Source: Trichoplax adhaerens (taxonomy: Eukaryota > Animalia > Placozoa). Taken from it: DNA of 64,000 bases. The notes under the pieces are model-generated. The model saw nothing but the letters and a program-made list of their open reading frames with translations. It did not search any database and had not been told where the DNA came from. Of this stretch, positions 1-63,413 are shown one piece after another (position 1 is the first letter of the stretch; each line of letters opens with the position of its first letter). Position numbers and translations under genes: made by a program. The stretch is taken from the NCBI RefSeq assembly GCF_000150275.1, contig NW_002060959.1, positions 10,632 to 74,631 on the forward strand, in the 5' to 3' direction.

Positions 1-757
1 ATAGTTAGGCTAGAAATTTTAGTAATGAAAATGAATCCATGATAATTACAGCTAAACAACTGATTTACTTCAATGCTTTGATGTTCTATATAGAGGGTAG
101 AAGGCGTGAAACCTTCATGTATATAGCTGATAGAATAAAATCAAAGAAGTTAAAAGAATTTGGTCGAAAATTGAAATTACAGCCTAATGACGTTGATGAC
201 ATAGCCGATACGAGCGATGGCAGAATTGACAAGTGTATTCATCTGTTGGAAGCATGGAATACTACATTTACAGCAGAAGCGACATTTGATGTATTACTGT
301 CAGTTTTGAAAAGTTGCAAAGAGACATTAATAGACGATGAATTAAAATAAAATTACTTTTGCTGATGCCAAAATTATCACTACGTAATGATTGTATGAAT
401 GAAATTGGAAAGATAAATTATAGACTTAGAAAGGCGACCGGACAATGTTATGTGCATAAATTTTACTGGTGGAATGAATGGACTACTCTAGATATTTTGA
501 TTTAGTATAATTAAATTATGGCTTTACAAACCATTTCATTCCTTACATTTTTAGAATGATTTTATGCTTACTACTTCATACTGCATTGTCATAACATTTT
601 CTACAGGATTAAAGTTCGATCTATGATGCTTAGAATGAAGAAATTGATGACTGAGAAAGTTTCTTGTGCTTAAACCTGCTTGTGAAATACCATTCATTAT
701 TTTAATTTAGAAAATTAATTTATATTGAAGTTTATTGACATTTTCCTAGTTATGTTA
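1..757 (+). repeat. Segmental duplicate of ~31034-31788 (DD terminal exon plus 3' flank)
   Basis: Read-by-eye alignment is near-identical until ...ttattgacattttcctagttatgttacc, then diverges abruptly. Confidence 0.92.
94..350 (+). CDS. Terminal death-domain exon (DD type A) of a gene that starts upstream of the window
   Basis: Acceptor tctatatag|AG (phase 1); translates EGRRRETFMYIADRIKSKKLKEFGRKLKL..DVDDI..HLLEAW..ATFDVLLSVLKSCKE, a death-fold pattern; near-identical to 31127-31389. Confidence 0.8.
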
Positions 758-2302
758 CCACCAAGGCCCGCAATGACAGCGCACTCACAAGCAACGCCAA
801 TATTGAGTTATTGCTATTTTATAGAGAGACTGCCTCGTTAGTGTACAGCGTTATTGGCTAAATGCTGTATGGTAGGCTACGCTACTCTTAACGCTGACAA
901 CAACAGTCTTGATGGGTATGTTGTGTTGGCGCCAAAAGTAGTAAAACACGCCGGCCACTGCCAGCTCATTTGCATGTCAATCGTATACAGTAGAGTGTAC
1001 CGTTACAGACATACCATACAGTTGAAATAACTAGTAAAATCATCTATTAGTATGGTGAAGGTAGCTAATCGTGGGCTAGCACAACCGGAAGTAGTTCACT
1101 GCCAGGAACTAGTAACTAATATTACATTGCTAGTATATACTAGCTAGTTCTACTTCGGAAGTAGTTCACTGCCTTTTTTGAAGTAGTTCCTTGGTCTGGG
1201 CACCTGCAATTGGTATCGAAGCGACGATAGTGAATCGAAGAATTTATCAAGCACTCGTAAACGACAAACAGTAGATCAGTTAGGTAAGGAAATGAAGCAG
1301 TAATGGCTGTTCTTCGCATTGTAAAGCGATTAAATTACTCAATTAGTGTGTTGATATGAAAGTATAACTTATAAAAATTCGAGCCTAGTTTCATTGCAGG
1401 ACTAATTACTATAGATAAGTAGATTAGAACCAGCGCTATTAAAATTGAACATTTCTTAACATCGAACTTAATTTTGGGGTTATACCGTAACCATGGACTA
1501 CCATTTGTGCATATACACTGTTCTATTTGTTTGACTTACCGGCATCCATTAGGTATAAAATTGATTGATTTCATCGATAAAGATAGTGATAGTAGGCATT
1601 ATAACCTGTAATTAACGATTATGAAACAACTGTAATATTTTAAATCAGTTTTAAGGAACAATTTTCGCTTTTCGCTGTATTTACAATCATCAGCACTCTA
1701 AATTGGCCAATAGATCGCGTTGAACTTAAGATTCGTAAATCTGCGGTGGTTTCAATATAATTTGTTAGTTACTCGGGTAAATGGCACCATGCGTGCAGTA
1801 AATATGACCAATCTTTCTAAATATCCCTAATATACTGCACGGATACGCTAACATTGAGCTATAGTTACTACCTATTTCCGCTAATTGGATTAAAACTCTG
1901 CTATAGCTTTATTATTTAACTGACTTAGAAAAATAATGTAATCGAAGGTTACTATTAATTTCAAAACTTTCTAACATGCATCAAAAGCATCAGTTTACAT
2001 CAAATAGATTTTGCACTATTTTTGTTAACCATTACCTCTTAATAAGTAAGAAAATTTTTAGCATTGGCGTGGGTAACAGCAAAATAATCATTAATGAATA
2101 AGATACCAGTTTTTTAACACAGATTATTCCAAAATAATTACACATCCTCTACTACCCAACCCAACAGTATAAAGCGCTTATCTTAAATACAATCGCTTTT
2201 AATTAGAATTAGCGCAAAAGAAAAAAAGATACAGCTTCTATCAAAACTGTAGCTTTTCTCGAACTTAAACATCTATTTAATATTTTGGAAAAGCCACCCA
2301 AA

Positions 2303-2741
2303 ATGTCCTCAGGATTAATGACTCAAGAACATCGTGAAATCCTAAGAGCCAGTCGAATGTTACTTGCTCGAAAATGTCAGGATCAAATCTCACCGATATG
2401 TGAATGTTTATTTGAAGCGAATATATTAACATCATACCACAAACAAATAATCGAATCTAAATCGACGGCTTTTGAGTAAGAAGTTTTTATATAGTACATG
2501 TTCAGTAACTGTTAAACAGTATTCTATCTAATATGAAATGGCAAGCTAAATTAATAGTTTGTTTATTTACTGCAAGAATAAATTTTGTAGTCGGAGAGCA
2601 GTTATCGTAATTATTTAATTTTGTTTTACAGAAAAGTTTGCACTTTATTGGATATTCTGCCTGAGCGTGGTGATAGAGCCTTTGATGAGTTTTGCGATGC
2701 TTTAACATATTGTGAAATAACAGTGGAAAACTTCAATAGTG
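2303..2741 (+). CDS. CARD domain (exons 2303-2475 and 2632-2741)
   Basis: MSSGLMTQEHREILRASRMLLA...LFEANILTSYHKQIIESKSTAFE|KVCTLLDILPERGDRAFDEFCDAL; the LLDILP.RG..AF..F..AL motif is typical of caspase-2/RAIDD-type CARDs; donors GA|gtaag and G|gtaag, acceptor ttttacag. Confidence 0.9.
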
Positions 2742-5700
2742 GTAAGCATTAAAGTTTACAAATAGACCTAACGATTAAGACTTAAGGATGTGATACATGA
2801 TTATCCCACTTTCGAGTAGAAATAACAATAAAGCGATCAGAGTAGAAAATAGTACGACATGTACATAATGAAATTAGATTTTCAATTTACAGTAGTAGAC
2901 GATATGAAAACTTGTTAAAACAATAGCGATGTGTCGTTTCGACAAGGTAAATTAAAGATTAGTATCACTTTTTATGCTGTTATACTAGTATGTTGTCAAT
3001 GAACTATGTTTCCACTATAATTTTAACATGTTTAACTAGGACAAAAGGCTATAATTTATGATAATCATGTTGTGTAAGAGTTACAATTATTTAGATCATT
3101 GATAATTTAGTACTTAAGGTAATCGGTAATACGTACTTTTAACATGTATATAAATACTGAATTGAATTTGACATTAACCAGTACGTATTGAATTAACTTA
3201 TCAAGCTAAGAGCTTTTGTGATTAATTTATGTGTATTACATTAAAATATGATTTTTGATATTGCCTGCTATAATCAGCTAAAACTTTACCGCTACTTAAT
3301 CATTACATCCTAAATTTGTAATCAATTTGATATCGCTATAAATCTAACTTTCTGATAAATATTCTCTTTGTAAGTAGCTACATAGTAACTAAATTACCTG
3401 TTGTATCTGTTATTTAGGTCGAAAACCGAAAAACTCTAAAGATATTAAAAAAGACACAGGTAATTACAACTATAGACACATTTTAATGCTATTATGGGTT
3501 CATCACAATTTTAAGAATATCATTTATCCTTCTATGGTCGTTAAAATTTAATTATTATTAGGATTTGTCAAACTTTACTTAAAGTTATGTTTATGCAAGA
3601 TATTTAGCTGTACAGATACTGTAACATGAGATGAATACATTCCAGCTAGTGATTGTAACAGTGATTGTTATCAATGCAGCGTTTCACTTAGTATATAAGA
3701 TCAAATCTTACCGGTACGTAAATTTTCATATAAGTCAAACACAATACCATTTCACCTACAAATAATATAATCAAAGCTGAATTGACACCTTTTGAGCGAG
3801 CATAATCGATTAATTAGTTGTTTTTAATAATTAGTGTTGCTTACAAATGTTTCCTAGATCATTTTATGTTATTCTTCTAAAAGTAAGTCTCATAATAACA
3901 TATTAAGTTATAAGGCATAAATTTACATCTACGAGCGTCACTGCGTTGTAACACAAGTATATGAGGAAAAGCAATTGATTAATTGCTCAGTTTCTTGGTA
4001 ATCTATATGCTATTTTTCATTTTTGTCTTCAGTAAGGCTCAATAATGGGTAATGTAAAGATCGTCTTGGATTCGTATTCCATACATGCAAATGTAATAAA
4101 ACCTGTTCTACTAGCTGCATTTAGACTGCAAGCAATAAAAAGAATTTTATAATAGCATAGTTTTATTACTGATACTCTAACAATCGAAATACTAAGTAAT
4201 AGTATAACAGGCTCTGACGGACATAGAAAAATTTGTTACAACAGCAGATTTTTGAAACAAAGACTTAAAATAATAATAACAGAATAAAATAACTACTTAA
4301 GTACGTTCCCTAACATGTTTACAACGTAAAGATTGCAAACAATAACTCTTAATACTTACACAATCTAGTATGAGAACGAAGTTTTATGACTAGAATTAGA
4401 TTTTATAACTGAACTAACAGCCTCACTACAAGACTATTCTATAGTAGACATTGCAGTAATTTTGGTGCGTAATAAATAATTGATTTCTATTCTGTTTGCA
4501 TACGGAACTGTCGACTATGCTTTTAAGTCAATGAAATAAGGATTAGCATCATATCCTATATTATATGTCGTAATCGTAATCTAACTATATCTATTATAAA
4601 GACAATGAAAGACTCTATTTATAGTCCACAAATTACGGTAGATTTTCAATTTATAAGTTTGACATTTATGCTGACCAATGGTATATTAGAATGCACGGGT
4701 AATTGCAACTATAGAAACATTTTAATTCTCTCGTGGATTCAATGCAATTTTAAGAGTATTATATTCTTTGCTAAGCTCGTTAAAATTTAGTTCTTAAAAG
4801 AATTTATTATACTATACTTTAAGTTATGTTTGTGTTATATATTTAGCTATATAGATACTTTATCGTGAGATAAATACGTTCCAACAAGTAATTATAATTT
4901 ACAAAAATTAGCTACTGGAGTCGCAATGGACATGAAATTATCTTAAATCAAACTGTTTTGTATGATAATCATTAATAGTACAACTCATGTTCGTTATACT
5001 TTGCGAACCTTATATACTTTTACTTTTTATTGTCTATTAATTATCATTGCTACTTCTCACTAAGTATATAACATCATTACATCTCAAACAATTAAAGATA
5101 AATTGACGCCTTTTGAGTAAGCATAATTGGCTCTTAATAATTCGTAGTAAATAAGCGCATATATTTCAAAATAAAACAGCTCTACAGCACTAACACCGAT
5201 AAAATCGGGCTATATTACCCCAGAAATGATTTTAGTTTTCTTTCGTATGCATTCAATGTGCCTTTATACCGCTGAATTAATGAACTTGGGTTTATTTCGC
5301 AAGAATCTGAAACTAGTCAACAGGAAGGAATAGCAATACAAAACGATATGGATCCAATACAAGATGGTAAGTTAGTAATGGTCGTCTATATATCGTAATT
5401 AGTTTCCTTGCATGTATATACGATTAGGTGATGCCACTTATTACCATAAGATTAAAATATGTATGTTAGTTTATAATTAGCTTAGACGACATAAAATGAA
5501 ATAGTTCAATGCAAGCAATATTTTATACTTCAAATTGGCATGTTTAGAGGTGAAAGTTCGGCATTAGTCGCAATAAAGTAAAATAGAATAGTGAAGGGAA
5601 GTGTAATCTTTATTGAGCTAGTGTAAGAAAATAATCGTGTAACACTATCGGGTGAGTAACGACGTGACTAGTCGAATAACTATAGTAGTGTAGAATAGAT

Positions 5701-8154
5701 AAAGCGTGCAAGCATACCGTATAAATAACAGAACTAGCTAGCGAGATAGGCGAAAAAAGATAGCTTTTGTAATGTTAGGAGCACAGCAGGACGAAATTAT
5801 TTATGAGCGCGAATAATTCATGAAAATAGGTTACTTCTATTTTAAGCTAGTGCAACGGTATAATTTAGCTAGAGTACAAGATATTTCCACCGAGTAAATT
5901 GTTAAATATAGATCATACATATTTAGAGTTATGTTACAGTCTAGTGTAAACTAATACTTTCACTAAAAATTGACTATACTGTATTTAGAAGTGAACACTG
6001 CACAAATTTTATAAAGATATTAATGCATTTTGTTAGGAATTTTAGGAACGTCAATGAATTAATTACAACATCTAAAATATTATCGATATTCTTCCATTAT
6101 TTGATATTATTTAGATCTTAAAAGGCCTGATATCTTTATAGATATCGCTGATAATGCAAAGTCAATCAAAGTAATCGAACTTGGTCGAAAGTTACGATTA
6201 TCTAATAATGATGTTGACGATCTAGCCAATTCGAATGGTAACAGATTTGATAAGTTTATTCATCTGTTGGAGGAATGGTACTCTCAATTTGCCTCTGCAG
6301 CAACGTTTGATAAATTATTAGATGCTTTGCGTTCTTGCAATGAAGTAGTAGTGGCTGAGAAGTTGAAAAAGAAATACTCTATATCAAGCAAAAGTGGAGG
6401 TAAGATACGATTTGCGAGTACTGTATTGTATTTTAGGATAATTAACCACAATATCTAAGCCTAACATTTTCAATATGCAAGACGTATATAAGTATTACAT
6501 GATACAACTACGTCCTACCTCGCACTCGGTTTTTAGTCGCATTAATACCACACATACGAATCTGATATTTCAAATAATGATTGAATTTAGCTAAAATCGA
6601 TTGTTATGCATTCTAGAAAACACGAAGTTAGGTAGCCAATGTGCTACTGTAGATAATTCGACATAGGATATAAGCTTTACAAATAAATAAATGAACTATT
6701 TGATTGAGTAAATTCAGAAAATATACCAGTAACTAATTTTATAGCTGAAGTATTTAGCATTGCAGCTTTTACCAAACTAATCTGCTAATAATGCTACCTT
6801 TAGTACACTGTTCTATTTATTTGACTCACAGCATCTCTTAGGTATAAAACTTTATTGATGAAATCAATAAATGTAGTGGTAGTATAAATATTGAATTGAA
6901 TTTGACATTAACCAGTACGTATTGAATTAACTTATCAAGCTAAGAGCTTTTGTGATTAATTTATGTGTATTACATTAAAATATGATTTTTGATATTGCCT
7001 GCTATAATCAGCTAAAACTTTACCGCTAATTAATCATTGCATCCTAAATTTGTAATCAATTTGATATCGCTATAAATCTAACTTTCTGATAAATATTCTC
7101 TTTGTAAGTAGCTACATAGTAACTAAATTACCTGTTGTATCTGTTATTTAGGTCGAAAACCGAAAAACTCTAAAGATATTAAAAAAAACACAGGTAATTA
7201 CAACTATAGGCACATTTTAATGCTATTATGGGTTCATCACAATTTTAAGAATATCATTTACCCTTCTATGGTCGTTAAAATCTAATTATTATTAGGATTT
7301 GTCAAACATTACTTAAAGTTATGTTTATGCAAGATATTTAGCTGTACAGATACTGTAACATGAGATGAATACATTCCAGCTAGTGATTGTAACTTATAGT
7401 AATTAGGTAATAGAGTCACAACGTACATAAAACTATAACAAATTAAACTTCACTGCGTGGTGATGACTATTATTGTATTATCAATGCAGCTTTTCACTTA
7501 GTATATAAGATCAAATCTTACCGGCACGTAAATTTTCATATAACTCAAACACAATAACTATTTCACCTACAAATAATCAAAGCTAAATTTGCCGTTTTTG
7601 AGCAAGAATTACGTAAATTTAGAATATTCTTACCTGGAATTTAATTACGCACATAAGCATCGAAAGACAATAAAACCTATCATCATCAAAGATGTTGATC
7701 CAAAGAAGGATTTGATAAGTTCAGATGGCGAGAGAGATTTCTATGTTTTAGTTAGTGGTAAGGTCTACACTAAAATTCTTCGTCAAAAGCAAACAGATGA
7801 TGAATTCAAGAAAAAATTAGAGAAACTATATGGTACCGTTAAACAAAGAAATACGGGTCATTACATTTGTAACATGATTTGTGTATTCTTAGTATCCGTA
7901 TAAGAAATATTCTAATCACTTGTGTTTGCTTTAAATGATCTTTAAGTAGCAGTATGAGTGGTAAAGATCATAAAATATCGTCATGCAAAAGTACTTATTT
8001 TCACCGAACTATAAATTTGACGAATATAAATTTATGTTATATCTTGAAATTTTAGAAAGTATCGTCAAACCTAAGCCAGAGACCAAATCGAGTCAACAAC
8101 AACTTAGCCCTGCGAAAGACGAAGTTGACAAGATGGATACAGAAACGGCTCCAG
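2303..8154 (+). CDS. Multi-exon CARD - linker - DD - linker - partial TIR - linker gene; 3' end not found, possibly decaying
   Basis: Exons 2303-2475, 2632-2741, 3418-3459, 5304-5366, 6115-6399, 7152-7193, 7623-7856, 8056-8154 join in one frame using GT-AG sites; every intron after the CARD is phase 1; the 5304 acceptor and 7856 donor are weak. Confidence 0.6.
3418..3459 (+). CDS. 42-nt basic linker microexon (GRKPKNSKDIKKDT), phase 1-1
   Basis: tatttag|GT...ACAG|gtaatt; duplicated at 7152-7193. Confidence 0.7.
5304..5366 (+). CDS. Linker exon (ESETSQQEGIAIQNDMDPIQD), 5'-shortened
   Basis: Homologous to linker exons 56426-56509 and 57612-57695; donor G|gtaag; only a weak AAG acceptor. Confidence 0.55.
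6115..6399 (+). CDS. Death-domain exon (DD type A), 285 nt, phase 1-1
   Basis: tatttag|AT..; DLKRPDIFIDIADNAKSIKVIELGRKLRLSNNDVDDL...HLLEEWYSQFASAATFDKLLDALRSCNE; donor GAG|gtaag. Confidence 0.85.
6892..7603 (+). repeat. Near-identical duplicate of ~3158-3797, carrying a second copy of the microexon (7152-7193)
   Basis: Direct sequence identity visible (tgaattgaatttgacattaaccagtacg...), with one internal indel. Confidence 0.9.
7601..7856 (+). CDS. C-terminal half of a TIR domain (TIR_2-like)
   Basis: SKNYVNLEYSYLEFNYAHKHRKTIKPIII fits the TIR S..Y..S..C..E..YA....K.IIP motif (S and C altered); the N-terminal half is replaced by duplicated intron DNA. Confidence 0.65.
8056..8154 (+). CDS. 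99-nt linker exon (ESIVKPKPETKSSQQQLSPAKDEVDKMDTETAP), phase 1-1
   Basis: attttag|AA ... CCAG|gtaaat, open frame. Confidence 0.7.
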
Positions 8155-8959
8155 GTAAATTATAACTCATGTATTTTCTCAGTAAATAACAGAATAGTAA
8201 AGTGATGATAAATTTATGCTTCGCGCCTTTCAAAACAACGAATATATGACAATAAACATCTGAAACTAATTCTTTCATTTTCACTTCATGAATCACTCTA
8301 CTCAATTTCATTAATCTATTGATAATTTCAGCAAAAATAATTTCTTAGTATCTCAGTTACAGGATATTAATTGTAACTGTAGAAATCTTTGTTTACTGAA
8401 GAAAGGTTAATAATTATAATTAATTATTTACTTTTGGGGTTGAAGGGCGTTATTAGATTTATTATACTACCGTTTGAGAAAGTATGCTTTACAGACTTTT
8501 ATAATTTTCTAATCTGTAATATTATTGCCAATTTAGCATTGTACTTACTTCTTATTTACTTCTTATCCAAGATCTATCTAAGTTAAGCAAATTTTGATGA
8601 TAACATAATGTAAATTATCTTTACTCCACTCCTATTTTAACTACCCTATTTCGACGTCATTTATTGATATTGCTGACTATGGATTTACCAAAGATCAGTA
8701 TAAACATAGTTCAAAATATGAAAGGTAACAACTACTCTGTAGACTAATAACACATTTGAAACGTGTAGATTACGTACTAGTTGCTCTTAAATCATTCGTA
8801 ATACCTCATAGCTATCATGGTAAAGCCAAGATAGCCGATGCTTGACACTATGTAACTGAAAACTTCTTCAGGAAGATATCCTAAACTGTTAATAGTACCT
8901 CAAATGAGTTGTTAATCTAGTTAAATACTAATTAAGTAATATTTTAGAAGTTATTACTT

Positions 8960-10400
8960 GGGAATTCTACTGTGCATCATTTATGAAAGTACACATCATA
9001 CAAAAGCTCAGACACAATTTACCTACGATTTCTGTACAGAGCGCTATAAATTTAACAAACGAGCTACATATCACAGTAGATCAATTTTTATTACATTTTT
9101 TTGGCAATTAAACTTCAAGAAAAACTATCAGTTAATCTATAAGATAGATTTCTGTCGTTAGCGTAAACAGAGTATGCTTCATTACCGGGTACGGAAATGG
9201 AGCAGCAACTGCTGTTCTTCCTATTCTAAATCGATTAAATTACTCAATTAGTCCGTTAATATGAAAGTATAACTCTTAAAAAATCGAGTCTAGTCTCATT
9301 GTAGGACTAGTTACTATAGATAAGTAGAATAGAACTAGCGCTATCAAAATTAAACATTTCTTAACATCGAACTCAATTTTGGGTTATACCGTTATGCCCA
9401 GAATTCTACTGTGCATCATTTCTGAAAGTAAATATCGTACAAAGCACAGACACAATTTACCTACGATTTCTGCACAGAACGCTATAAATTTAACAAACAA
9501 ACTATGGTATAACGGTAGATCAATTATTTTATCTTAAACACTTTTTCTAGTGAGTAAACTTCAAGAAAAACTAAAAGTTAATCTATAAAATAAATTTATG
9601 TCGTTAGCGTAAATAGGCTATGCTTCATTGCCGAAGCTTCTAAAAGGATAGTGTTTTGCTACGATTTCTAAATTTTAATCCAAAAAAGCCATCAAACGAT
9701 CTTTCTTTAGAATAGGCAATTGCTAACATTTTTCTACTTGTAATGAAATGAAATGTGTAGAGATCAAGCTACAAAACTTTAACAAACTTTCATTCTACTT
9801 TCGTTGCACTCCGGTCGACTTAACGCTAATACTTTGACACCAAATAAAATTTGGGGAAATAAACGAACAATAATTTATTACAAAACAAAAATGAAGAGAA
9901 GTATAAACCGAACAACCTTACAAATACTTAGCTTTAAGCATTATTAAAATAAATGACAGACTTAAAAACTGTCAACGACCAAACAACCTTTCAAAAAAGA
10001 AGAACGTTCTAACTTACGACAATTCGACCCCGAAGGCCTTTTAAATTCAACAAGTTCTTCAAGTAAAATCTTCTTCTACTCTCCCTTCTAAATTTTTTAG
10101 TTGTACTATCATTTATAGACTTCGTAGAGCCATCTAATGTATTTAAAACTAAATATTTGCTAACCAATTGCTCTTCAGATCTGTTTTAGAAAACTACTTT
10201 GCACCATTTAAGAAAACAAAAATCACTCAAAGTTCAGACACATATTACCCTACGATTCCATTACAAAACACTATAAAACTAACAAGCTAACTATAAAAAT
10301 GCATCAAACTTCACTCCTAACTTAATTTCTATCATTAATACACTATAAAAGTCTAAAAATCAACCTTTAAACATCAAGATTTAGTCATAAAAACAACAGT
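8960..10400. repeat. Three dispersed copies of a ~220-bp non-coding repeat (~8960-9185, ~9401-9630, diverged ~10185-10400)
   Basis: Shared core ctactgtgcatcattt..gaaagta...cagacacaatttacctacgatttctg.acaga.cgctataaatttaacaaac. Confidence 0.7.
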
Positions 10401-10583
10401 TTAACTACTTAACAATCAACACAACCTCTACCAATTTCCATCTTATTTTCTATTTTCCTCACTAAATTCTCCTAATGTGACTTCGCAGTCACGTCATAAA
10501 ATTCCAAAGTTTTAAATTCATAACAAAAAGTCCAAATTTCAAAAATCAACTCTTACGATATTTTTCATGAACAAAAATCCCCC

Positions 10584-10653
10584 AAAATTAAATTAAAACA
10601 GAAAAATTATATCAGACAAAAATTAAATTAAAACAGAAAAATTATATCGGACA
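10584..10653. repeat. 2 x 35-bp tandem repeat
   Basis: aaaattaaattaaaacagaaaaattatatc(a/g)gaca occurs twice. Confidence 0.85.
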
Positions 10654-11374
10654 TAAATCTGACCGGTTCCGGAATCCGAATCCGAAAAATTCGGTTTTTA
10701 TAAAGATCACAGTAATCGCTTATCGAAAAAATTTATATGACTATTACGACTACTTTTCTGACATTAGTATCGCTGAGTATTCGCGAGTATTGACAGTTGA
10801 TGTTTTAGCGTCAGATTGTACGGTGACTGTATGATTATAGACTACATTACAGTACTTTATCGTCATGTTATAAATCCCCTTTCTCTAAGGATAGGGTTTT
10901 GCCACTAAGTCAAATTCCTTTACAATTTGAATAAACGATCAAACGCCCTTTCTATAGATTAGGCAATTGCTCTCGGGCTATTTCTATAGTAATCTATATA
11001 ATGCCTTGTAAAATAATGAAGAAGAAAAGATGGCGACATGATGATTTGGCAGGGTAAAACTTAAAAACACTATCACTTTCTAGGTATTTTCTATAGTAAA
11101 ATAGTACTAGTTACATACCAAAAAGCTATAAAGTACTCTACTTTTAGTCCTTTACTACATACTTATCTACGTATTTAAGATACAAAATTTGTTCATTATA
11201 GTGTAGTTCATACAAAACATATTAAATATTAGAATATATACCATCTTAAAATCTTATACCACATTACTGAATATAACACGATCAACTTTTCAATAATGAA
11301 CTATTAAAAAACTTTTCTGTAGTAATCGATACGAAAACTTGTGAGAAACGATAGCGATATGCCGTTCTGACAAG

Positions 11375-11987
11375 GTGAAATAAGGATTAGCATCATATCC
11401 TATATCATATGTCGTAATCGTAATCTAGCTATATCCATTGTAAAAACAATGAAAAGCTCTATTTATAGTCCACAAATTACGGTAGATTTTCAATTTATAA
11501 GTTTGACAATCATGCAGACCAATGGTATATTAGAATGCACGGGTAATTGCAACTATAGAAACATTTTAATTCTCTCGTGGATTCAATACAATTTTAAGAG
11601 TACTGTATTATATTTCTTGCTAAGCTTGTTAAAATTTAGTTCTTAAAAGAATTTATTATACTGTACTTTAAGTTATGTTTGTGTTATATATTTAGCTATA
11701 TAGATACTTTATCGTGAGATAAATACGTTCCAACAAGTAATTATAATTTACAAAAATTAGCTACTGGAGTCGCAATGGACATGAAATTATCTTAAATCAA
11801 ACTTTTTGTATGATAATCATTAATAGTACAACTCATGTTCGTTATACTTTGCGAACCTTATATACTTTTACTTTTTATTGTCTATTAATTATCATTGCTA
11901 CTTCTCACTAAGTATATAACATCATTACATCTCAAACAATTAAAGATAAATTGACGCCTTTTGAGTAAGCATAATTGGCTCCTAATA
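11375..11987 (+). repeat. Near-identical duplicate of ~4532-5140 (intronic DNA of the CARD gene)
   Basis: The ORF track shows the same pseudo-ORF at 4605 and 11449; direct sequence identity. Confidence 0.92.
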
Positions 11988-14014
11988 ACTCGTCATTACT
12001 GTTAAGAACTGCCCTGTGACGAGTAATATGTCTTAACACATACATACCGTAATCGTACTCATTTTACAACTACAGACATAACAGTTACTTTAACTAGTGC
12101 TGCATATAAGCGCTTCTTATACTAAGCTATATTACTCCTCTACGAGCAAATATCAAAATAGCATTGTTACAAGTCGAAATGTATAACGAGAAAAATGCTA
12201 AACTATTATAGAAAGTATACTATAAGTCTACTGATTAGTTAGTTTTCTTGACATCAACCTACAGTACGACTCTAAATACTGACGATCTCCTTTCGTTGGG
12301 AAGGACAGTGACACAATACTATTCTCTCTTAGACATAACTGAATCCAAACTTTGTTAAAAGTCAATCAATTTATAGTGAATGGAAATAAATATTAATTAT
12401 CTGTTTATAGATAATATTATTAAGCTATGCAGTTATCTATTAAAAGCATGAAAAACATCATAAATGACGGTATGTAAATGCATTCCTAGATAAATTTTCT
12501 GACGGAATTTATGATATCACAGCGTAACAAGTATATTAAATTGTAAGGCGTCAATTACATACCAGTGCAGCATTGTGTTGCGATATAAGTGTATAATAAT
12601 GACCAATCGATTAATTGCTCAGCTTTTTAGTAGTCTGTGTGCTAGTTGACATTTTGCCTAAACTAATGCTCAACAAAGAGTAATTTAATATTCGAATCTA
12701 ATTGTTAAGACAGTAGTGTAATTGCAAAGAAGAGCGATTATCGCTCTTCCATTGACAACTTCCAGAGTTAGTAAGAGAATTTAAATCTTTATAAGATTTG
12801 GTTAAATCAATCATTTACGATATACAAAATCGTAACTAGATATACGAAGAATACACTACATCGTAACTAGTGATTATAATTGGTTAAAGGCGTTTACACT
12901 TCATCCTAGATAACCCTAAAATCGATAGCCAAAGGACTTTGTCTCTTTGGCTGCGTATACAAATACTACAATTAATAGCTCAGTTAAGCCTGCACTGACT
13001 ACTAATAATCGAGGTAACTAGTATATTATTTCTATACTTAAGCTAAGTAAGGGCTCTTGTTAATTTATAATTTGACATTTTCATTACCGAGAGTAATAAA
13101 ATTTAACCATTTTAGCAATATCCTTCAAAATTACTTTTTACGAAGTTTACAGTCTACCTATAACAAAGTTGTTTTTAATTTTGGAAGAAACTTTGTACTA
13201 AAAGTTATCATAGCTAAACTAAAATAAATTACGATTAATTAATTGATGTTCTATCTTACTTGAAATTATCCCATTAGTAAGATTAGATTTGCTGTAAGTA
13301 AATAGCCGCTGCCGCTAACTGGATTTATATCGTAACTATAGACTGCCGTTTGTCCATATATACACACTGTTTTAGTTGCTTGACTCATCGACATCTCTTA
13401 GGTATAAAATTTATTAATGAAATCAATAAATACAGTTATATTAGGGATTGCAACTGATAATTAACGATTATGAAACGACTTTAGTATTTTAAATCACTTT
13501 TAAGGAACTATTTTAGCATAGCGCTGTATTTATAATCATCAGCAGTCTAAATTGGCGAATGAGTCGCGTTGAACTTAAGATTCTTAATTCTGCTATCCTT
13601 ACAATATAACTTGTTAGTTACTCGTATAAATGGCACCATGTATGCAGTAAATATGACTGAGCTTTCTCGCTATCCCCAATACACTGTACTAATACATCAA
13701 CATTGAGCTATAGTTACTACCTATTTCTGTGAATTAGATTAAAACTTTGCTATTGCTTTATTAATTGATTGATTTGAAAAAATAATGTAATCGAAGGTTA
13801 CTATAAATTTTAAAACTTTCTAACATGTATCAGAAGCATCAGTTTACATCAAATATATTTTGCGCTATTTTTCTTAATCATTACCTCTTAATAAGTAGGA
13901 ATATTTTAAGCATTTGCGCGAGTAATAGCAAAATAATTATTAATGAATAAGATACTAATTTTTCGACACAGCTTATCCGAAAATAATTACGCATCCTCGA
14001 CCACCCATCTCTAC

Positions 14015-19174: not shown

Positions 19175-19303
19175 TTATTCATTATTATACATCAAAGTTC
19201 TTACTCAAGAAAAAGAAAGATGAATTTCAGAAATCATCAAATAAATTGTGTAATTTTGTTAAACCAACGAAGGAATCGAAAATCAATTCGATCTCCAATT
19301 AAT
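19175..19303 (+). pseudogene. Frameshifted remnant of a TIR-exon 3' end abutting the gap
   Basis: LYIKVLTQEKE/DEFQKSSNKLCNFVK resembles VYTKILRQKQTDDEFKKKLEKLYGTVK at ~7763-7845. Confidence 0.5.
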
Positions 19304-33731: not shown

Positions 33732-42376
<8,645 letters not shown>

Positions 42377-44260: not shown

Positions 44261-44302
44261 GCTGTATCTTGCAATACAGTTGCGATAATTATGGAATTTG
44301 GA

Positions 44303-49703: not shown

Positions 49704-50623
49704 ATGTCCAGATTGATCGCATTTGTTGTTATCCTAGCTGCTATTGTACCCAATGGATTTTCTTCGGTATATTCTAGCTACATACTTAATGAAGAAACTC
49801 TTTTCTTTGCTGTTGCTATGCTTCATGATTACAGTAACATTTTTAGCAAATTACTATTTCTACTAATAGGACTAGTATTAAAATCATATTTTACTGTTGA
49901 TAGGTGGTTATCAAGCATCGCGCTAAATCTTGTTATGAAGTCAAAGAGTATCTTCAAGCTAACGAGAATGGATTTTATAATCTATTCGATAGCTTAGGCA
50001 GTCCTTACACTACTTATTGCGATTTTGAATCCGATACACCATTTGTTTGGACCTTGATAGAATCGTTTTCGTTACAAGAAGCTCAAAAAACAGCTAATCG
50101 TAAAGGTGTGTATGTAAATCATCCTATCGGAGAATGTATTCTATCTTGGTCAGCATTTCGATTATCTAGACTCAGAATGGATACAATCATAAGCTCATAT
50201 GGGACAACACACTATCGTACAACGTGCAATTTTAATTATGTTAATGGAACTGGATTAGCTAATCGTCGCGATTACTTGAGAGGGGAGATTTGTCGACGCA
50301 GTTATTTCCACAGTACTTGGGCATTAAATAGATATGGCCAACCGACGTATATATGCAACTACGTCGACTACGTCAATGTCCGTGGAACTACCTGTCGCAA
50401 GTGTACTGTTCCATTTGTTCGTCCTACAAGTAGCGTCCATGAACATATCGATCTTAGCATTGCAGCTTCCCATTGCAGTAAATTCACTCCTACCGATTCC
50501 ATTTCCAATGAAGACGTTTTCGGACATTACGGTAATGCTAATCCGTTATTTTCATGTACGTCGAATGTGAATTCTACGACTAATTGGTGGTTAGGAGGTG
50601 CTTATATTGCTGAAGCTTTTTAA
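49704..50623 (+). CDS. Secreted Cys-rich protein with fibrinogen-related (FReD/intelectin-like) N-terminal motif, ~260 aa
   Basis: Exon 49704-49766 is signal-peptide-like (MSRLIAFVVILAAIVPNGFSS); phase-0 intron; exon 49904-50623 KSCYEVKEYLQANENGFYNL..YTTYCDFESDTPFVWTLIESF. Confidence 0.85.
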
Positions 50624-52632: not shown

Positions 52633-53477
52633 ATGGTCAAAATCTGGTCTCTCTTTGCTATTGTGGCTCTCTTACCACTTGTCATGCCAAATGTAAGTCT
52701 AATAGCTCAAGTTTAGATCGGATATACTCGTATACCTTTAGTAATTCTAATTCCCTTGATTTCGATCTGTAATATGAATAATGACGTTTACTTCTGTAGA
52801 CACATCACAAACCTAAATCATGCTATGAAGTTAAACAATTCCTTAAAGCTACTGAAAATGGCTTTTTCACTCTTTATGATGCTAACGGTAACCCGTTCCG
52901 AAGTTTTTGCGATTTCGAATCAGAACCGCCTTTCGCTTGGACATTAATTGAATCTATGACTCTCGAAAATGCTCAAAAAGCACAACATAATAAGGGCTTC
53001 AGTGTCAATATCCCATTAGGCGAATGTCATACCTCTATGTCTCTCTTTCGCCTTCCATCCCATCATATGTCTTCTGTTTTATCTTCTTATGGATCCACAC
53101 ATTATCGTTCAACATGCAATTTCAATATCATTGAAGGAACTGGTCTAGCTAATCGTCGCGACTATATAAGATTCTCGGCATGTAGAGGTGCTTCTACTCT
53201 CAGTAATATAAACGGTGGCTGTGTAGAGGTAGATTATATCAATATCAGAGGGCAATCATGTAGAAAGTGCCAGATGCCATTTTATGCTTCTAGTTCATAT
53301 CATCTTCATATCGATCTTAGTGGCGCAACAACTACTTGTAGTAGATTTGGTTTTACTAATTTTGTAGCCAATGAAGATGTGTTTGGCTACTATAACTCTC
53401 ATAATCCAACATTTTCTTGTACTGCCAACAAAAATTCAACTACTGCTTGGTGGATAGGTGGGGCATATGCCGAGTAA
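52633..53477 (+). CDS. Paralogous secreted Cys-rich fibrinogen-like protein, ~245 aa
   Basis: Exon 52633-52692 MVKIWSLFAIVALLPLVMPN|gtaag; exon 52800-53477 THHKPKSCYEVKQFLKATENGFFTLYDANGNPFRSFCDFESEPPFAWTLIES...STTAWWIGGAYAE*. Confidence 0.88.
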
Positions 53478-55762: not shown

Positions 55763-58700
55763 TCACTCTTTTCTTTGTATGCAGTATTCCTCTTTCAATT
55801 TTTCGGCCATTTTTCCCTCTCTGCATTCACATAAAACTTTCAATAATGTATCAAGCTTTGTTGTTGAGCTGAATTCAGAATACCATGCCTCCAGCAGACG
55901 ATCAACCTTCCAAAATCTGCTATTATTTGAATCAACTATTTCGTTAATGCTATTCGACGATAAATGCAATTTTCTACCAAATTCGGCCAACTTAGTTGAT
56001 TCTATTTTATCGGCGATATCTATAAAGATGCTACGTCTATTAGAATCTATTAGGGAAGATCAAAATATTTGAACAAATCAATAATGTGGAGGTCATTATT
56101 AATTTGTTGTCATTGCTAAAATTCCGAGTACAGCACATCGTTATTTACCTATAAATTAAAACACTGAAAATCATTGACAATGAACTATTCATTTTTAGGT
56201 AGTATTCACTTAGCATTGGACTAATGAGCAGATTTTACATTACCAGTGGTTTTAGTATCATAATGACAATTCGAATATGTAACGAAATTATGGCAATGGA
56301 TTAATAGCTTTTAGAACAACGAAATGACTATGCTATAAAAATTATGCTTCGTGAGAAGGCAATATCAAGCTGTTACAAGTTCTCGAAAACTATTTGAGAT
56401 AAATAGGTGATCATTACTACTTTACCATCCTGTATTGGATCCATTGTGTTTTGAGTTGCCGTTTCTCCTTGTTGACTAGTCGTAGATTCTTGCATAACTG
56501 GTTTGATACCTACCGATTTACGTTAACAGATGCAAGTAATATATGAAATAAATATGAGAATATTAAATTTTTGGTGTTAAATATTGAAGGCTGTAGGTTC
56601 GTTTAAGTCGCTTGACATGGTATTGCAGCAGGTATTACAACATTATTTTATTCATATCTTTAACAAGCTCTATGTTTACGCACATGTACATATAAAAGCG
56701 AAAAAAGACACAATTTGAAACAAGTCAATAGATTCTATCAACTTGTCTAATTCAGAGTCACTATGTCCTATGATAACAATTGTTAAAATGCCTAAATGAG
56801 ATCTATGTTGAAAGTTTTATCACTATTTGACAATTTATAATATTGCTGGAATATGCGTGATACTCGTGGAACTCCAATTCGAGACGTCGAAACATTATTT
56901 TATGGCATATGAATATAAGATAGCGAATGCAATTGTTACTAATTCACTTGTCGTTATCTTATTCATAGTTAGTAAACTAATTAATATTTAAAACAGTAAA
57001 ATGGATAGAAAGGTTAGATAAACCAGTTTATTCTCACATCAATAGGTTTAAGAGTATCTATCATTGATTGAGACCAAAGCTGCTGTGATACTGATTATAT
57101 ATAATTATTATTCGTTAAAATACGATGTCAATTTCAAAATTTATAGTCATAATTGCGAATTTTTGGATTAATGAAAAGAACTTAATATCAAATAGTACCC
57201 ATCTCTAGTAGCTTATCCCTTACAAATTACTATGAATGGTATATTCGAGCACTACAAGAATAATTTGTCATACTGTATTGATTGCACATGCTTACTTATA
57301 AAAGTGTCATGAGTGCCTAAACGAGATCTATCTCAAAACTTTTATCACTGCTCGACCATTCGCGATGTTATTGGAGTATGCGTTATACTCATGTAGCTCC
57401 AATTCAAGATATTAAAACATTAAGTTTTAAGTCAATAAGGAGATAAGAAAGCGAAAGCAATTGTAATTATTAATTCACTCGTCTGTAACTTATAATTATT
57501 TATAACCAATAAAATAATTAACGATTTATGCAGTAAAATATATAGAAAGTCTAGAAAAACGAATTTTTTTTAAGTAAATAGTTTTAATAATAACTACCAT
57601 TGCTAATTTACTATCTTGTAATGGATCTATACCGTTTTGAGTTGTTGTTCCTCCTTGTTGACTGCTTATTGATTCTTGCACCACAGGTGTAATATCTACA
57701 GATTTGCGTCGAGTAAGTAACATCTGATTATTTATGAAAATATTGAATTTTAGCTGTGTTAGGTTTTATACATTAAGCGTATAATTTCATTTCAGTCGCT
57801 TGATATGGAATTATAGCAGCGGTTGCTACATTATTCTATCCATCTACTAAACAAGCTATATATATGCGCACATGTAAATATAAAAAGCTATCGAAAGACA
57901 CAATAGGGATCAACTCAATAGATTCTTTCAATTTGTCTAATTTAGAGCTTCTTTGGCTTCTTATAACCTTATTTTAAATCCCTAAATGAGATCTATGTTA
58001 CAATTCTATCTCTACTCGAGCATTCACGATGTTACTGGAATATGCGTAATACTTGTGCAGCTGCAATTTAAGGTGTCAAAACATTACTTTTTATGAAATA
58101 TGAACATAAGAAGGCGAATGCAATTGTAATCATCAATTCATCTATCGCTAAATTACTCATATCTAGTAAACTAATTAACATTTAATGTAATAAAATGAAT
58201 AGAAAGGCTAGAAAAGCCAATTTCTTTTTACATCAATAAATTTTAGAGTATCTACTGTTAATTGAAACAAAAACCATTGTAGTACTAGTCAATATTCGTT
58301 AAAAATTCGATATCAATTTCAAAATTTATAGTTATAATTGTAAATTTTCTTAATTTAGGAAAGAATTTAATATAATTAAGATTTATCTCTAGTGGTTCAT
58401 CATTCTACATATTACTGTAAACAGCATATATTTGCGTACTATACACATGAATAATATTGTTTCGCAGGCTCAATTATAAAATTGTCATTCTTTTACATTG
58501 ACGTTAAGTCGTATTGACGCTAACACTGAAATGAACGAAGGACTAACAAATTAACGGACGATACGGCCGACTGGAGTAGTGGTGTCGCAAAAAGCTCGCG
58601 ACGCGGAAACCAGGGATCATTAAAACTCCTTAAAAGGTAAAGCTACAACAGCTGAACGTGTCTACAACAGACTAGGAGTAGTCTAGTTTGAGGTTTAAAA

Positions 58701-61700
58701 GGATTTATTTAATTTAGTAGTCTTGAAATCCAAGGCTACTTCATCCACACGCACACCACTCGGCTAATCATCAACGGATCAGTTAATGAGAGGACCGGGC
58801 TTTATATACTTTCTCTCGGCTGCACAACTTAGATAAATAATTCTAAAACTTATACAGAACTGTATGGCCAACTGTTTACGAAGTCTGTACTTCGTCGCAA
58901 CTGGTGTAACTAATGTTGCCTATTGTGTAAGATTAAGGTTTTACTCGTGCCTAGCGATTGACCGGAAAATTAGACTCGTGCTGCGTACGACGTAAAATTT
59001 AGAAATGTGCAAGCTATTGCATGACGGTAATAAACACTCATTGGAATTTAATTTAGTAATTTAAAAGTGTAAATCGTCGGCTCTTTGGTATCTAGCAGAT
59101 TCAATATCGACTGAATCTTGGCCTGTATCTAGCTTATGCAAGATTACATTTTAAACTACTCAGAATTTTATTAGAAACCGAAAGATAATTGCGGTGTTTT
59201 TGCTATCTCCTTTCTTAGTTATAGCTAAAGTACACAAAAATATCTGAGATATTGCGAATAATGATGAAATTTTCAAGATCAAATTATACCAGTAAGTCAA
59301 TTTTACTTCGATTTTAGCGCTAATGTTAAAGAATAAAATATCTGTATATAGCCTATGAAAGTATTTGCTATAATTCCAGTACTAATGTTAATGTCAATCT
59401 ATTGATTTGCGAAAATTTTAGTTTATTATGCTCTCTATTCAAATATACTGTAAACTATTGATATATATTATACAGAATAAAACTCATAATTATAATAGGA
59501 AGGCTTCTTACTAATACTCTTGCTGCAGATTCTAGGTTACTTATCTATACTTGCAAAAAGCATCTACTACTTTTGGTTGGTCAAACGGATTACGATTCTA
59601 TTCTGCAGCAAAATCTAGGTAGATTACATTCATTACTGTTTAATCAAGGTAAAATCTCCGGTCTACCGGCGATAAAGCTAACAAGATTTTGCTTGAAGAA
59701 GGCCGTCAGTAGAGAAATGAAATAAGCAATTTAGAGTTTATCAGATCTAGCTATGAACATCTCCCAGAATTGAGATTAACTCAAAAAAAAACATGCTAGT
59801 TAGGAAAAGTAACAAAGGAATAAACTGAGTTACTAGCAAATCTAAAATGAATCATTCCTTAAGCTGTGGATTTAGTCAAGAGAACTAATCAAATTCTTTT
59901 TGCTAATGTATTGCTTTCAAATTTTGTCTGTAATTAATTAAATAGTGTATTATATTTTAATCTCAACTAGCTATACCTGGCAACATTGTCCACCCATGGA
60001 CAGATCCACATTCGTAAATTTCATCACAATTGCAATATAACAGCTGTGAGCTGCTCTGGACTGGACTATTCACATCAACAAATGTATTGCAATTTGCACA
60101 CTTTATAAAATATAAACAATCTGAATTTTTGCATCTTGGCATCCGTTCCTTAATCAGTGATGATAATTTATTTCGAATAAATATATATGGTGGTTTTTCA
60201 TTTATAAGTTTTTTTACTTTATCTTCTATCTGTCGTTGTAGGCTAGGTTTATTTGACATCATTCGATAGCGATACTTGATACCAATCCAGGAACTTTCTT
60301 TTTTAACAATAATATCACAACAATATTCTTTCAGACGATATTTTGCACACTTGTAACGTGGCTCAATCTCTGAACTTTGCCATTCTTTATAACAAGATAC
60401 AAGTAAACAAAATAATATGCCATCTGGAATATAAGGCATTTGTGGTGGCTTAAATCCTATGTACAGCCATCCCGATGTTTTATATCCTTTGTCATCAAAT
60501 TCCTGGCTATTTGAACGAAATAAATAGGGCACGAAATACTGATCAGGACAATTGTCATTTTCATTACTGATCTTGCAAATAATGTCGTACGATTCCATTA
60601 AATCCAACAGAAATTTTCTGTCCTTTTCTTCTACTTCGAGCTTGTCAAATTGGTCATTAATATAGCGTGATGACATAATTCCTGAATCTCGAGCAGCTTC
60701 ATATTCTGCGTTTATTCTTAATCCTTTACAAACAGGTTCATCTAACTGAATAATTGTACGGAATATGTTTAATAGCCATTCAACTTGTGTAATAACTTTT
60801 CCTTTAGCAGATTCTTTTTGGCAATAAACAATTTCTCCTAGATCATGCAGATAGAGTAGCATTTGGTGAATATCTTCACTTCCATCGCATAATTGATACT
60901 CTTTCGCTAATTGTTCGATTTCTTCAGCTGCCATAATTCTACTAATTTTTTGATTCAACTTTGTAGAAAATTTTGCCGCTTGTTCGTTAAATCGATCCAA
61001 AGAAGTATGCAGTATAGCTGCCATAATATACCATTTGAATGGAATTTGAGAGAAGTGATCGATAGAAGGTTGATGATTAACAAAATCTCTCATGATATTA
61101 TGCAATTGCCCACAATTTTTTTGACGTTGCAATCGCACTTCTTCGCCATTATCTTCGTCATTACAGTTAAATATTATTTTAGAACCATATATATGATCAG
61201 AATAAGAAGGAAGCTTATTATGAATACATCTACTAAATTTCGAAAATCTTTGCTGACAGGCATTGTTATCACCTATTTTATCAGCATGCGTTCCGACTAA
61301 AATAACTATAGGCCACGCGATATTTTCTAGAGTACCATTAATTTCCGTTACAGTACGAGCATTGCTTGTGCTACTACCAATAATTGAGGCGAGCCATTCT
61401 TGTATAGCCTCCAAATATGTCATTTCGGTATCATTGCCGTCTCGATCAACGACATATTTATCTATATCTTGAGACATATCGAGGACTAACATGTAGATAC
61501 AATTGCAAGATATAAATGGCTGATGTGTTATGTGATAGATAGAATGGCCAGCAAAATCCCATAGTTTACCATAATGGCAGTCATCTATTCCGATATTTTG
61601 GTTGGACTCATAGTGACCTCGAAAGTAATTCTCGAGAAATTCTAGAGGGATGGTCTCTTCATCTGCCGATACAGACTCAGAAAAGGTCGACTCCTCATCT

Positions 61701-63413
61701 TCCAGTACAGACTCAGAAAAGGTCGACTCTTCATCTGCCGATACAGACTCAGAAAAGGTCGACTCCTCATCTTCCAGTACAGACTCAGAAAAGGTCGACT
61801 CTTCATCTGCCGATACAGACTCAGAAAAGGTCGACTCCTCATCTTCCAGTACAGACTTATAATAATCTGATAGAACTTGAGATAACTGTATTGCTTGTCG
61901 AGTATCATAGGAGGAAAAATCTGAAAGCGATTTCTCTAATTTCATTTGGTATTTAATAGTTTCTATTGCTGTAACTACTTTTCTCGCTAGGACAGATATA
62001 AACTCATCGACCGATTTATTATCGACGTTATATGTAAGTAATTTGATAAGTTCTTTCGTTACTACTGCCGCCGTTGTCGGTCCAATTTTACCAATCAATC
62101 CTTGCCGTGTGAAGGCTTGGATAAGACATGATTTTCCGACATTTTGAGGACCTGTTATCAGGAATCTAATGAAATCATTACGACAAGATCCCTCTTTTCT
62201 AGCTTTTGCATACGCTTCCTTATATTCTTTCTCTTGAGTGAATATAAAATTAAATGTCAAAGAATAATTAATACATTTTACCTCTAATAGATACTTCAAA
62301 AGCGTCACCAGGTATATAATTGGAAAATTACATTTTCATAAATTTCCTGACTTAGTAATATTGCTACAGTAACTATCCATGACATGGTATTGTATATAAA
62401 AAATTGCAACTCTTATCATATCTTGCAAAACTTTCATGCACGAACAACTCAACTTTAAAAGAAGAAAGTTGCACAATTAATGTCGTAGTTACCAATTACG
62501 TTCTTGATCAATGTTCCACATACTTAATAAAGAAACCTGATGTGATTTATAGTAATGTGAAAATTGTTTTCCTATAGTATAACATACCTTCTATGATCTT
62601 GGACATCGCATTCCTTTCTTGCTTTTCCAGTTCATTTAGGCGTAGAAACGCTACAATAGTATCGCATAAAATTAATATTACAAAGAGGTTGTCGTACTTA
62701 TTAATTCTTATAACAGCTAAAACTATTTTGATGAAGATTATATAATTATAGGTCTTAATAAGCAAAGTAAATACTGTAGTAGGTACTAATCTTATTATCA
62801 GATAGGCAAGTTGATTTACTTTGCTAATACTCGTTTAAGGATGGAAGTAATATTAACATTTCGAAGTCATAGAAATAAATTAAGAGCATATTTAACATGT
62901 AACATAAAACGCTCAACAAAAATATTATATTCTACTTTGTTTCAATTTTTTAAAATACTACTATTCAACAATATACTCCCACAACTATCAGTGAATCGCA
63001 TTCCTAAGAGCATTCACTAATTTAGTGAATGAGTAAATCAGTTGCGTTCAACAAAGCCATCACATTAATATATGTATGTTACGTATACATAGTTCGTGTA
63101 CCATGATTATAATCGACAATAGAGAACGTATTAAAGATAAAGCAATTTGTCGTACAATAACCTTGATCTCTGTTTATTTCATCGACCATACCACTTTTAC
63201 CAATGCGCAATAAAGCATCATTCAGTCGGTCAATGGTAGCGGATAAGCCGTATTTCGTATGCCATTTCTTGAGAAAAGCCATCGCTTGATGATCTTCTAT
63301 TTTGTATTTTGACTTGATAGCCTTGATGTTAATCGAAGGATCTAAGATCGCTGCTAACCTTGTCCAATCCCCTTTAATCCTGACTGCAATGTTGGAAAAG
63401 TAGACTCTGGGGT
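55763..63413 (-). CDS. Roco-family GTPase: DD - linker - Roc-COR - linkers - DD; 5' end not identified
   Basis: Exons 63413-63162 (DD-B), 62650-62588, 62232-59977 (Roc-COR), 57695-57612, 56509-56426, 56046-55763 (DD-A, stop); all internal exons are multiples of 3 with phase-1 GT-AG borders. Confidence 0.7.
56400..58465. repeat. Tandem duplication (~1.19-kb offset) carrying the 84-nt linker exon and its intron
   Basis: ~56420-57265 aligns with ~57605-58465; a sub-duplication ~56760-56960 also recurs at ~57305-57490. Confidence 0.8.
58468..59095. mobile_element. Possible LTR-like/transposon remnant in a Roco intron
   Basis: GC/CpG-richer block starting where the tandem-duplication homology stops; minus-strand TATA-like (tatataaa, ~58805) then aataaa-like (~58705); no TSD found. 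Confidence 0.3.
59977..62232 (-). CDS. Roc GTPase plus COR domain exon (2256 nt)
   Basis: G1 GPQNVGKS, G3 WDFAGH..Y.ITHQPF, G4 LVGTHAD; COR motifs IPFKW, LLYLHDLGEIVY, WL, YFVPYL; C-terminal CANC..CNC. Confidence 0.9.
61655..61857 (-). repeat. In-frame 72-bp (2 x 36-bp) tandem repeat, ~2.8 copies
   Basis: Encodes (SVLEDEESTFSE SVSADEESTFSE)n; the DNA copies appear identical. Confidence 0.95.

Follow-up and report, generated by a model that had tools for sequence, protein, structure and literature searches.

In Metazoa, domains that have phase-1 introns on either side have been reused and recombined within introns, a process described by Patthy as class 1-1 exon shuffling, and the modules concerned are mostly extracellular and mainly of beta structure (PMC8001218). 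A significant exon-shuffling signal has been reported throughout Metazoa, Trichoplax adhaerens included (Franca et al., as cited in PMC8001218). Here, a 64,000-nt stretch of the T. adhaerens genome (contig NW_002060959.1, C1398:10632-74631; hereafter the window) was analyzed, in which four genes, designated A to D, encode combinations of CARD, death domain (DD), TIR, and Roc-COR modules. These share with the metazoan class 1-1 modules the phase-1 flanks on both sides, the reuse in many contexts, and the recombination in introns. In contrast, the Trichoplax modules are cytoplasmic (all-alpha death-fold domains, TIR, and a GTPase exon of 750 residues), and their joins are still readable.

Domain shuffling of TIR, DD, CARD, and related domains in expanded families of immune type has been described for the network of innate immunity in amphioxus (Zhang et al., 2008; PMC2575513), and domain grafting for lophotrochozoan RLRs (PMC8998645). 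Both cases resemble the present one in their new death-fold/TIR combinations, for which exon gain and loss were suggested as a route; the word "phase" is found in neither paper. In brown-alga ROCO genes, shuffled and alternatively spliced symmetrical LRR exons were proposed to generate a repertoire (PMC11378527). Those are 72-nt phase-2 exons within one repeat domain, whereas whole phase-1 domains are exchanged between architectures in Trichoplax. For vertebrate NLRP genes, a further parallel, a literature search on phase-1 exons gave no usable result.

For Trichoplax itself, at least 17 ROCO genes with CARD, DD, TIR, and other partners (Civiero et al., 2014; PMC4104024) and two CARD+TIR "MyD88-like" proteins (Kamm et al., 2019; PMC6321704) have been described. 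The organism and the families are the same as those treated here. The passages of these two papers on the Trichoplax families give no intron phase, exon structure, or breakpoints, and the words exon, shuffling, and tandem do not occur in Kamm et al. (2019); compared with those passages, exon phases and breakpoints are added here. We propose, with a probability of about 0.8, that the locus is part of a lineage-specific cluster of death-fold signaling genes built from class 1-1 exon modules that have been shuffled between genes. The modules would be CARD (two exons), three DD types (one exon each), TIR (two exons), a single Roc-COR exon, and tail exons, with short class 1-1 spacer exons of 30-108 nt separating them.

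Intron phase and gene structures

The window (G+C ~30%) contained, in this order, the last exon of gene A (94-350, +), gene B (2303-16512, +), gene C (27388-31389, +), a fatty acid synthase gene (-), three Cys-rich open reading frames (ORFs), and gene D (63413-55763, -). Intron phases were mapped by exact splice search for the database proteins P0023, P0026, and P0005 and by scripted chains for genes C and D, and joined gene chains were checked in scripts for open frame and identity. Across genes A to D and TRIADDRAFT_61416, a relative of gene D on C1392, module-border introns were in phase 1 in 24 of 24 cases. None of the four types of intra-domain or leader intron was in this phase (0/4): the intron within CARD was in phase 2, that within TIR in phase 0, the leader intron of gene C in phase 2, and the first intron of P0005 in phase 0. 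Because the intra-domain introns were not in phase 1, the uniform phase is specific to module borders. Since the gene copies are related, about 12 independent positions instead of 24 were counted, and the chance of uniform phase 1 was then roughly p = 5e-7, with the phase-1 background of 0.3 being an assumption from general knowledge.

All 15 internal exon lengths listed in the original prediction were present as AG/GT-bounded open exons in phase 1 (15/15), and the splice maps of the gene A, B, C, and D chains confirmed its claim that CARD exits, and the terminal DD is entered, in phase 1. The class 1-1 pattern, that is, phase-1 introns on both sides and a length divisible by 3 (marked 1-1 below), was backed by RNA in gene B and by a model of Trichoplax sp. 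H2 in gene C, and is predicted in gene D; accordingly, use of the proposed junctions in transcripts was borne out by RNA contigs for the joints of gene B, and stands at the level of the H2 model for gene C and of prediction for gene D. Pfam searches were run exon by exon, and whole-protein searches used P0023 and P0048. Six exons matched Death (PF00531) at 34-47 bits against a cut-off of 22.6 (E 2e-12 to 2.9e-8).

The exons of gene B were as follows.

2303-2475 (+): CARD exon 1 with the start codon, donor in phase 2; P0023 map, joint to exon 2 in three RNA runs
2632-2741 (+): CARD exon 2, exits in phase 1; Pfam CARD half, P0023 map, RNA joint
3418-3459 (+): 42-nt spacer x42a (1-1), in direct repeat 3149-3659; RNA joint to the linker
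5304-5366 (+): 63-nt linker (1-1); RNA joint at either end, homologous exons in genes A, C, D, and duplicate E
6115-6399 (+): DD-A (1-1); Pfam Death E 2.6e-9, RNA joints on both sides
7152-7193 (+): second 42-nt spacer x42b (1-1), in direct repeat 6883-7393
7590-7832 (+; 7623-7832 in the JGI model): remnant of C-terminal TIR exon; weak TIR_2 match, 97% to locus L027 from 7590
8056-8154 (+): 99-nt spacer (1-1); RNA joints from x42 and from 7832
9761-9837 (+): alternative terminal exon, short soluble tail, phase-1 entry; RNA loose end after 8154 in run X16, letter-for-letter match
16415-16512 (+): terminal exon, predicted hydrophobic C-terminal membrane anchor, phase-1 entry; RNA loose end after 8154 in run X5, 28/30 identical
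14015-14888 (-): inverted CARD copy in the last intron, both exons, with stop codons (pseudo-exons)

The first eight exons, with 7623-7832 as the TIR piece, reproduced P0023 (TRIADDRAFT_60657) exactly; the intra-CARD intron was in phase 2 and every later intron in phase 1. RNA evidence came from the contigs of three runs, two of RNA and one probably of RNA, with reads placed at ≥90% likeness, and supported the joints 2475/2632, ~2741/x42, 3459/5304, 5366/6115, 6399/x42, and 7832/8056. By exon halves, CARD (PF00619) scored 18.7 and 16.4 bits, each under the cut-off of 23.9 for these single exons; the database annotation of the whole protein P0023 contains PF00619 and Death, and no TIR. CARD exon 1 also has an internal phase-1 acceptor at 2313 (AG at 2311-2312), which fits RNA loose ends at 2311. 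A second internal acceptor, at 2289, was dropped as the window reads GG there, not AG. The original prediction ended gene B too early: the alternative tail exons at 9761 and 16415 follow 8154, and the paralogue model P0024 has the same kind of C-terminal tail as the exon at 16415-16512. The inverted CARD was also found, at C1398:89998-90591, in a duplicate of parts of gene B, duplicate E, where its first exon is open, and the inversion is therefore older than that duplication.

By architecture, the CARD+DD plan of gene B would be that of CRADD/RAIDD, and the H2 annotation names its relatives CRADD. MAVS has a CARD and a C-terminal membrane anchor, and the likeness of gene B to it is one of architecture only. 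Comparison with MyD88 needs an intact TIR, which is absent from gene B. Its TIR_2 match (Pfam E 0.03) covered profile positions 55-101 only, short of a complete domain with N-terminal strand and BB-loop. An intact TIR was found in paralogue G (C1398:124061-127309, locus L027), encoded by two exons, of which the first begins in phase 1 and ends in phase 0. The window matched this paralogue at 95.7% over 3998-4531 and at 97% from 7590 on (to 9739). Missing from the window by this comparison are the exon for the N-terminal part of TIR, 7 nt at the start of the C-terminal exon, and the native acceptor. The acceptor at 7623 in the JGI model is cryptic: RNA support for it was not seen in the contigs, and homology to the intact paralogue begins at 7590. 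Gene B had been predicted to encode a CARD-DD-TIR chimera, which does not hold for a truncated remnant of this kind. Likewise, the RNA joint 7832/8056 sets the TIR donor at 7832 instead of the predicted 7856, giving an exon of 210 nt, not 234 nt, with the donor still in phase 1. A further joint, x42/8056, fits skipping of the remnant.

A full TIR was kept in paralogue G and in the H2 protein P0049. On contig C1246 the order is DD-A, CARD, x42, TIR, which corresponds to the CARD+TIR type termed MyD88-like by Kamm et al. (2019; PMC6321704). A 30-letter RNA loose end at the junction of the two TIR exons had a one-letter mismatch to the genomic paralogue.

Genes A and C were composed of the following exons.

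94-350 (+): gene A, terminal DD-A, phase-1 entry; Pfam Death E 1.9e-9 on the sister copy, exact P0026 splice map
27388-27416 and 27827-27894 (+): gene C, leader exons, the second exiting in phase 1; mapped with H2 model P0053
28041-28319 (+): gene C, DD1 (1-1); Pfam Death E 2e-12
29179-29217 (+): gene C, 39-nt spacer x39 (1-1); P0053 map, also in H2 model P0048
29349-29594 (+): gene C, DD2 (1-1); Pfam Death E 2e-8
29861-29968 (+): gene C, 108-nt spacer x108 (1-1); 100% match to P0053
30587-30616 (+): gene C, shortened linker of 30 nt (1-1); form used in H2 model P0053
31127-31389 (+): gene C, terminal DD-A, phase-1 entry; Pfam Death E 1.9e-9

The DD at 94-347 belongs, as the last exon, to a CARD gene of its own, TRIADDRAFT_60656 (gene A). 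Its DD-A region was 93.8% identical at the nucleotide level to 31036-31788. The exons for CARD and linker are found upstream of the window, on the far side of an assembly gap inside TRIADDRAFT_60656 (C1398:7913-10631, 2.7 kb). Judging from collinearity with gene C and from H2 model P0048 (DD1-CARD-linker-x39-DD2), this gap probably hides x39, DD2, and x108 exons, and gene A would differ from gene C by a swapped 5' module. The public model of TRIADDRAFT_60656, with 207 residues, is probably too short. The chain of gene C, which encodes three DDs, was open and identical to the H2 model TrispH2_011573 (P0053) at 343 of 353 residues, with its leader intron in phase 2 and all other introns in phase 1. 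A linker start at 30554 had been proposed, but an in-frame TAA is present at 30559-30561, and the usable exon is the 30-nt form listed above.

Gene D was reconstructed from the following exons, listed in the direction of transcription.

63162-63413 (-): N-terminal DD of DD2 type (1-1), 252 nt; Pfam Death E 2.9e-8
62588-62650 (-): 63-nt spacer (1-1); prediction only
59977-62232 (-): Roc-COR exon, 2256 nt (1-1); Pfam COR-A E 1.7e-13, Roc E 4.8e-9
57612-57695 (-): linker 1 (1-1), 84 nt, or 63 nt with donor 57633 as in P0025
56426-56509 (-): linker 2, 84 nt (1-1); P0025 junction map
55763-56046 (-): terminal DD-A, phase-1 entry; Pfam Death E 4.3e-9, junction mapped with P0025

This chain was open, with AG/GT borders throughout, and no exon upstream of 63413 was found. 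The database model P0025 backs only the last junctions (linker-linker-DD-A); the predicted 84-nt linker 1 exists as an exon, but P0025 uses a first linker of 63 nt instead. ROCO membership was indicated by Roc (36.9 bits) followed by COR-A (51.1 bits), both over the Pfam cut-off, in a 790-residue ORF. The Roc-COR part showed 69% identity to TRIADDRAFT_61412 and 61414, and the paralogous Roc-COR parts start and end at the same residues. A search returned no annotated protein for this exon, only paralogues with identities of ≤69%, and gene D seems to be missing from public models except for a C-terminal fragment. In TRIADDRAFT_61416, which has the same plan, a Roc-COR exon of 2097 nt and a spacer of 99 nt (both 1-1) precede a terminal DD-A, and the C-terminus of TRIADDRAFT_61416 was 100% identical to a DD exon on C1392. 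In addition, a perfect 72-nt tandem repeat (36-nt sub-unit, 2.8 copies) was present within Roc of gene D (61655-61857, -); it encodes an acidic Ser-rich insert between the P-loop and DxxG, where the paralogues are non-repeated.

Modules shared between genes

Modules were moved to neighboring genes and to other scaffolds by duplications and deletions that span 0.5-3 kb and end in introns. Self-comparison of the first 144 kb of C1398 revealed a patchwork of duplicated segments of 0.5-3 kb. In and around gene B, 1485-2864 matched gene A at 92%, three segments matched duplicate E (2886-3659 at 95%, 5149-6804 at 90%, and 6883-7623 at 93%), and the two segments 3998-4531 and 7590-9739 matched paralogue G. 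Two extra copies of DD1 matched 25308-28664 and 27185-28664, with a common end at 28664; just past it, the segment 28707-29171 continues in gene A, right before the assembly gap. The breakpoints at 4531/4532, 5145/5149, 6804/6883, 28664, and 28707 are all intronic. A 0.6-kb element is present twice in gene B (4532-5145 and 11376-11993, 96% identical) and again near paralogue G; its copy at 4532-5145 lies precisely where the inserted linker and DD-A have their left breakpoint.

The spacer x42 with its flanks forms a 511-nt direct repeat in gene B (3149-3659 and 6883-7393, 98.4% identical), which brackets linker and DD-A. In the genome compared (105.6 Mb, 1414 contigs), this repeat was found only in loci of the present death-fold family. 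Copies of the CARD cassette (2296-2893) with 93-94% identity were present on two other contigs, C1381 and C1372; the one on C1372 comes right after a Roc-COR exon. The pair of linker and DD-A occurred in genes B, C, and D, as had been predicted, and its intron flanks were homologous between genes, about 80-105 nt upstream of DD-A being ~70% identical and about 40 nt downstream of the linker ~79%.

A tree of 18 DD exons consisted of three clades, each of which extended across several architectures. It joined the DD-A of A with that of C (100/99) and the DD-A of B with that of E (99/98), though the CARDs of A and B were 84-92% alike. Incongruence between module trees had been named beforehand as support for shuffling, and it was found here, with the DD-A of A and B in different, well-supported subclades. 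The architectures that share modules included CARD-DD, CARD-DD-tail, DD-DD-DD, DD-Roc-COR-DD, Roc-COR-CARD, CARD-TIR, and CARD-CARD-DD. Independent models of Trichoplax sp. H2 comprised CARD-x42-linker-DD-x42, DD1-CARD-linker-x39-DD2, TIR-only, CARD-linker-x42-tail, and CARD-CARD-DD. Because every module boundary is in phase 1, new combinations and skipped exons stay in frame. The mix-and-match locus of the original prediction is thus largely supported as a description of its evolution, with modules recurring across architectures and duplication breakpoints in introns.

In two partial H2 models, P0047 and P0048, a DD exon and the CARD exon of the following gene are spliced together by way of an open stretch that lies upstream of the start codon of the CARD. 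These joins may represent either read-through between tandem genes or an annotation merge.

Alternative explanations

Several observations weigh against the shuffled class 1-1 modules proposed here. At 7590 the break fell 7 nt into an exon, and shuffling was therefore not always clean. Some copies are decaying: the truncated TIR, the inverted CARD, which carries stops, and, on C1392, a DD-A that is broken. The dN/dS of recent duplicates was 0.5-4 on very few changes, which fits relaxed constraint and diversifying selection alike. The draft assembly is gap-rich at the locus, with gene A spanning a gap, and the junctions of gene D upstream of its linkers are predictions.

Some of these observations are what an ordinary birth-and-death tandem family would produce. 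In such a family, the phase would be inherited from a few ancestral exons, the mosaics would be by-products of unequal crossing-over in an array rich in repeats, and many copies would be becoming pseudogenes, with no selected toolkit. We regard this as possible, though less probable than the shuffling of class 1-1 modules. The decaying copies, the in-frame stop that the longer version of the linker in gene C contains, and dN/dS values near or above 1 agree with it. However, the frames of genes B and C are intact, each with an annotated H2 counterpart; the predicted chain of gene D is open, though the database model matches only its C-terminal part; transcripts exist; and the intra-domain introns are not in phase 1.

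It is rather doubtful that diversity arises mainly through Dscam-like alternative splicing at single loci, with cassette skipping and alternative tails giving CARD-only, CARD-DD, and anchored or soluble isoforms from gene B. RNA joints of the skipping type were detected (x42/x42, 5366/x42, that is, linker to x42, and x42/8056), all of them in frame, and two in-frame continuations follow 8154, one at 9761 and the other the membrane tail. Reads were placed at ≥90% likeness, however, and the paralogues E, G, and C1246 are 90-97% identical, so the skipping-type joints may stem from several genes. In the genomic sequence of E, x42 comes directly after the linker, the contigs cannot phase junctions, and x42/x42 is the only joint that needs skipping in every known copy.

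It is very improbable that the chimeras arose from collapse or misjoining in the draft assembly or from a mixture of haplotypes. The first 144 kb of C1398 contain eleven N runs, one with a length of 12 kb, and parts of the locus recur on the small contigs C1246 and C1268, but the breakpoints fall within unbroken sequence, the same combinations appear in H2, which was assembled and annotated separately, and RNA contigs cross the junctions.

The proteins may act as adaptors and receptors that assemble by homotypic death-fold contacts, and a C-terminal helix may tether some of them to a membrane. Exon skipping in the RNA would add isoforms to the products of shuffling in the DNA. The DD-A copies of different genes were only 44-57% identical, and a single DD interface common to them, as originally predicted, is an assumption.

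A more speculative extension, which we consider unlikely, is that the short spacer exons and conserved intron flanks act as standard connectors at both the DNA and RNA levels. The clearest case would be the 511-nt x42 repeat around linker and DD-A. In the DNA, connectors would recombine with each other, so that entire domain cassettes are inserted or deleted; in the RNA, one connector would be spliced to another, perhaps even between neighboring genes, as hinted by the DD-to-CARD models of H2. The output would be combinatorial sets of anchored and soluble adaptors from one locus, and, if true, one of the earliest-branching animals would have an intracellular equivalent of the diversity of Dscam type.

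Surrounding sequence and implications

The window contains a single N run.

18344-19174 (no strand): intergenic assembly gap, standing for about 732 nt

The last exon of gene B ends 1.8 kb before it, and the start codon of gene C follows 8.2 kb after it. The flanks (17458-18343 and 19177-21068) matched C1398:1-892 and 1625-3509, and were also collinear with C1398:96081-96712 and 97445-99507, in both cases at 97-98% identity. Both paralogous copies join the flanks by exactly 732 nt, and the two bridges are AT-rich (27-28% G+C) and 98% identical to each other; neither contains a long ORF or likeness to any module. No exon or reading frame depends on the gap.

Between gene C and the Cys-rich genes, an animal-type fatty acid synthase gene was identified (33732-42394, -), with a single terminal exon of 5.1 kb (1711-residue ORF). 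The three Cys-rich ORFs (46429-46980, 49904-50620, and 52800-53474, all +) are tandem paralogues with mutual identities of 35-56%, and the copy at 46429 looks degraded. Pfam gave no match to the spacer exons, to the pieces of the inverted CARD, or to any of the three Cys-rich ORFs of the window.

The advance made here is a real one: a known process, class 1-1 shuffling, is well resolved in a family where it had not previously been laid out, the domain diversity itself having already been published. Public gene models are corrected for TRIADDRAFT_60657, TRIADDRAFT_60656, and the Roc-COR exon of gene D; that of TRIADDRAFT_60657 includes half a TIR by way of a cryptic acceptor and leaves out the real tails. 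The phase-1 rule extends to cytoplasmic death-fold, TIR, and GTPase modules in a placozoan. As the joins are young enough to be read, the mechanism, unequal recombination in introns and possibly between spacer-exon repeats, is open to direct study instead of being inferred from old genes.

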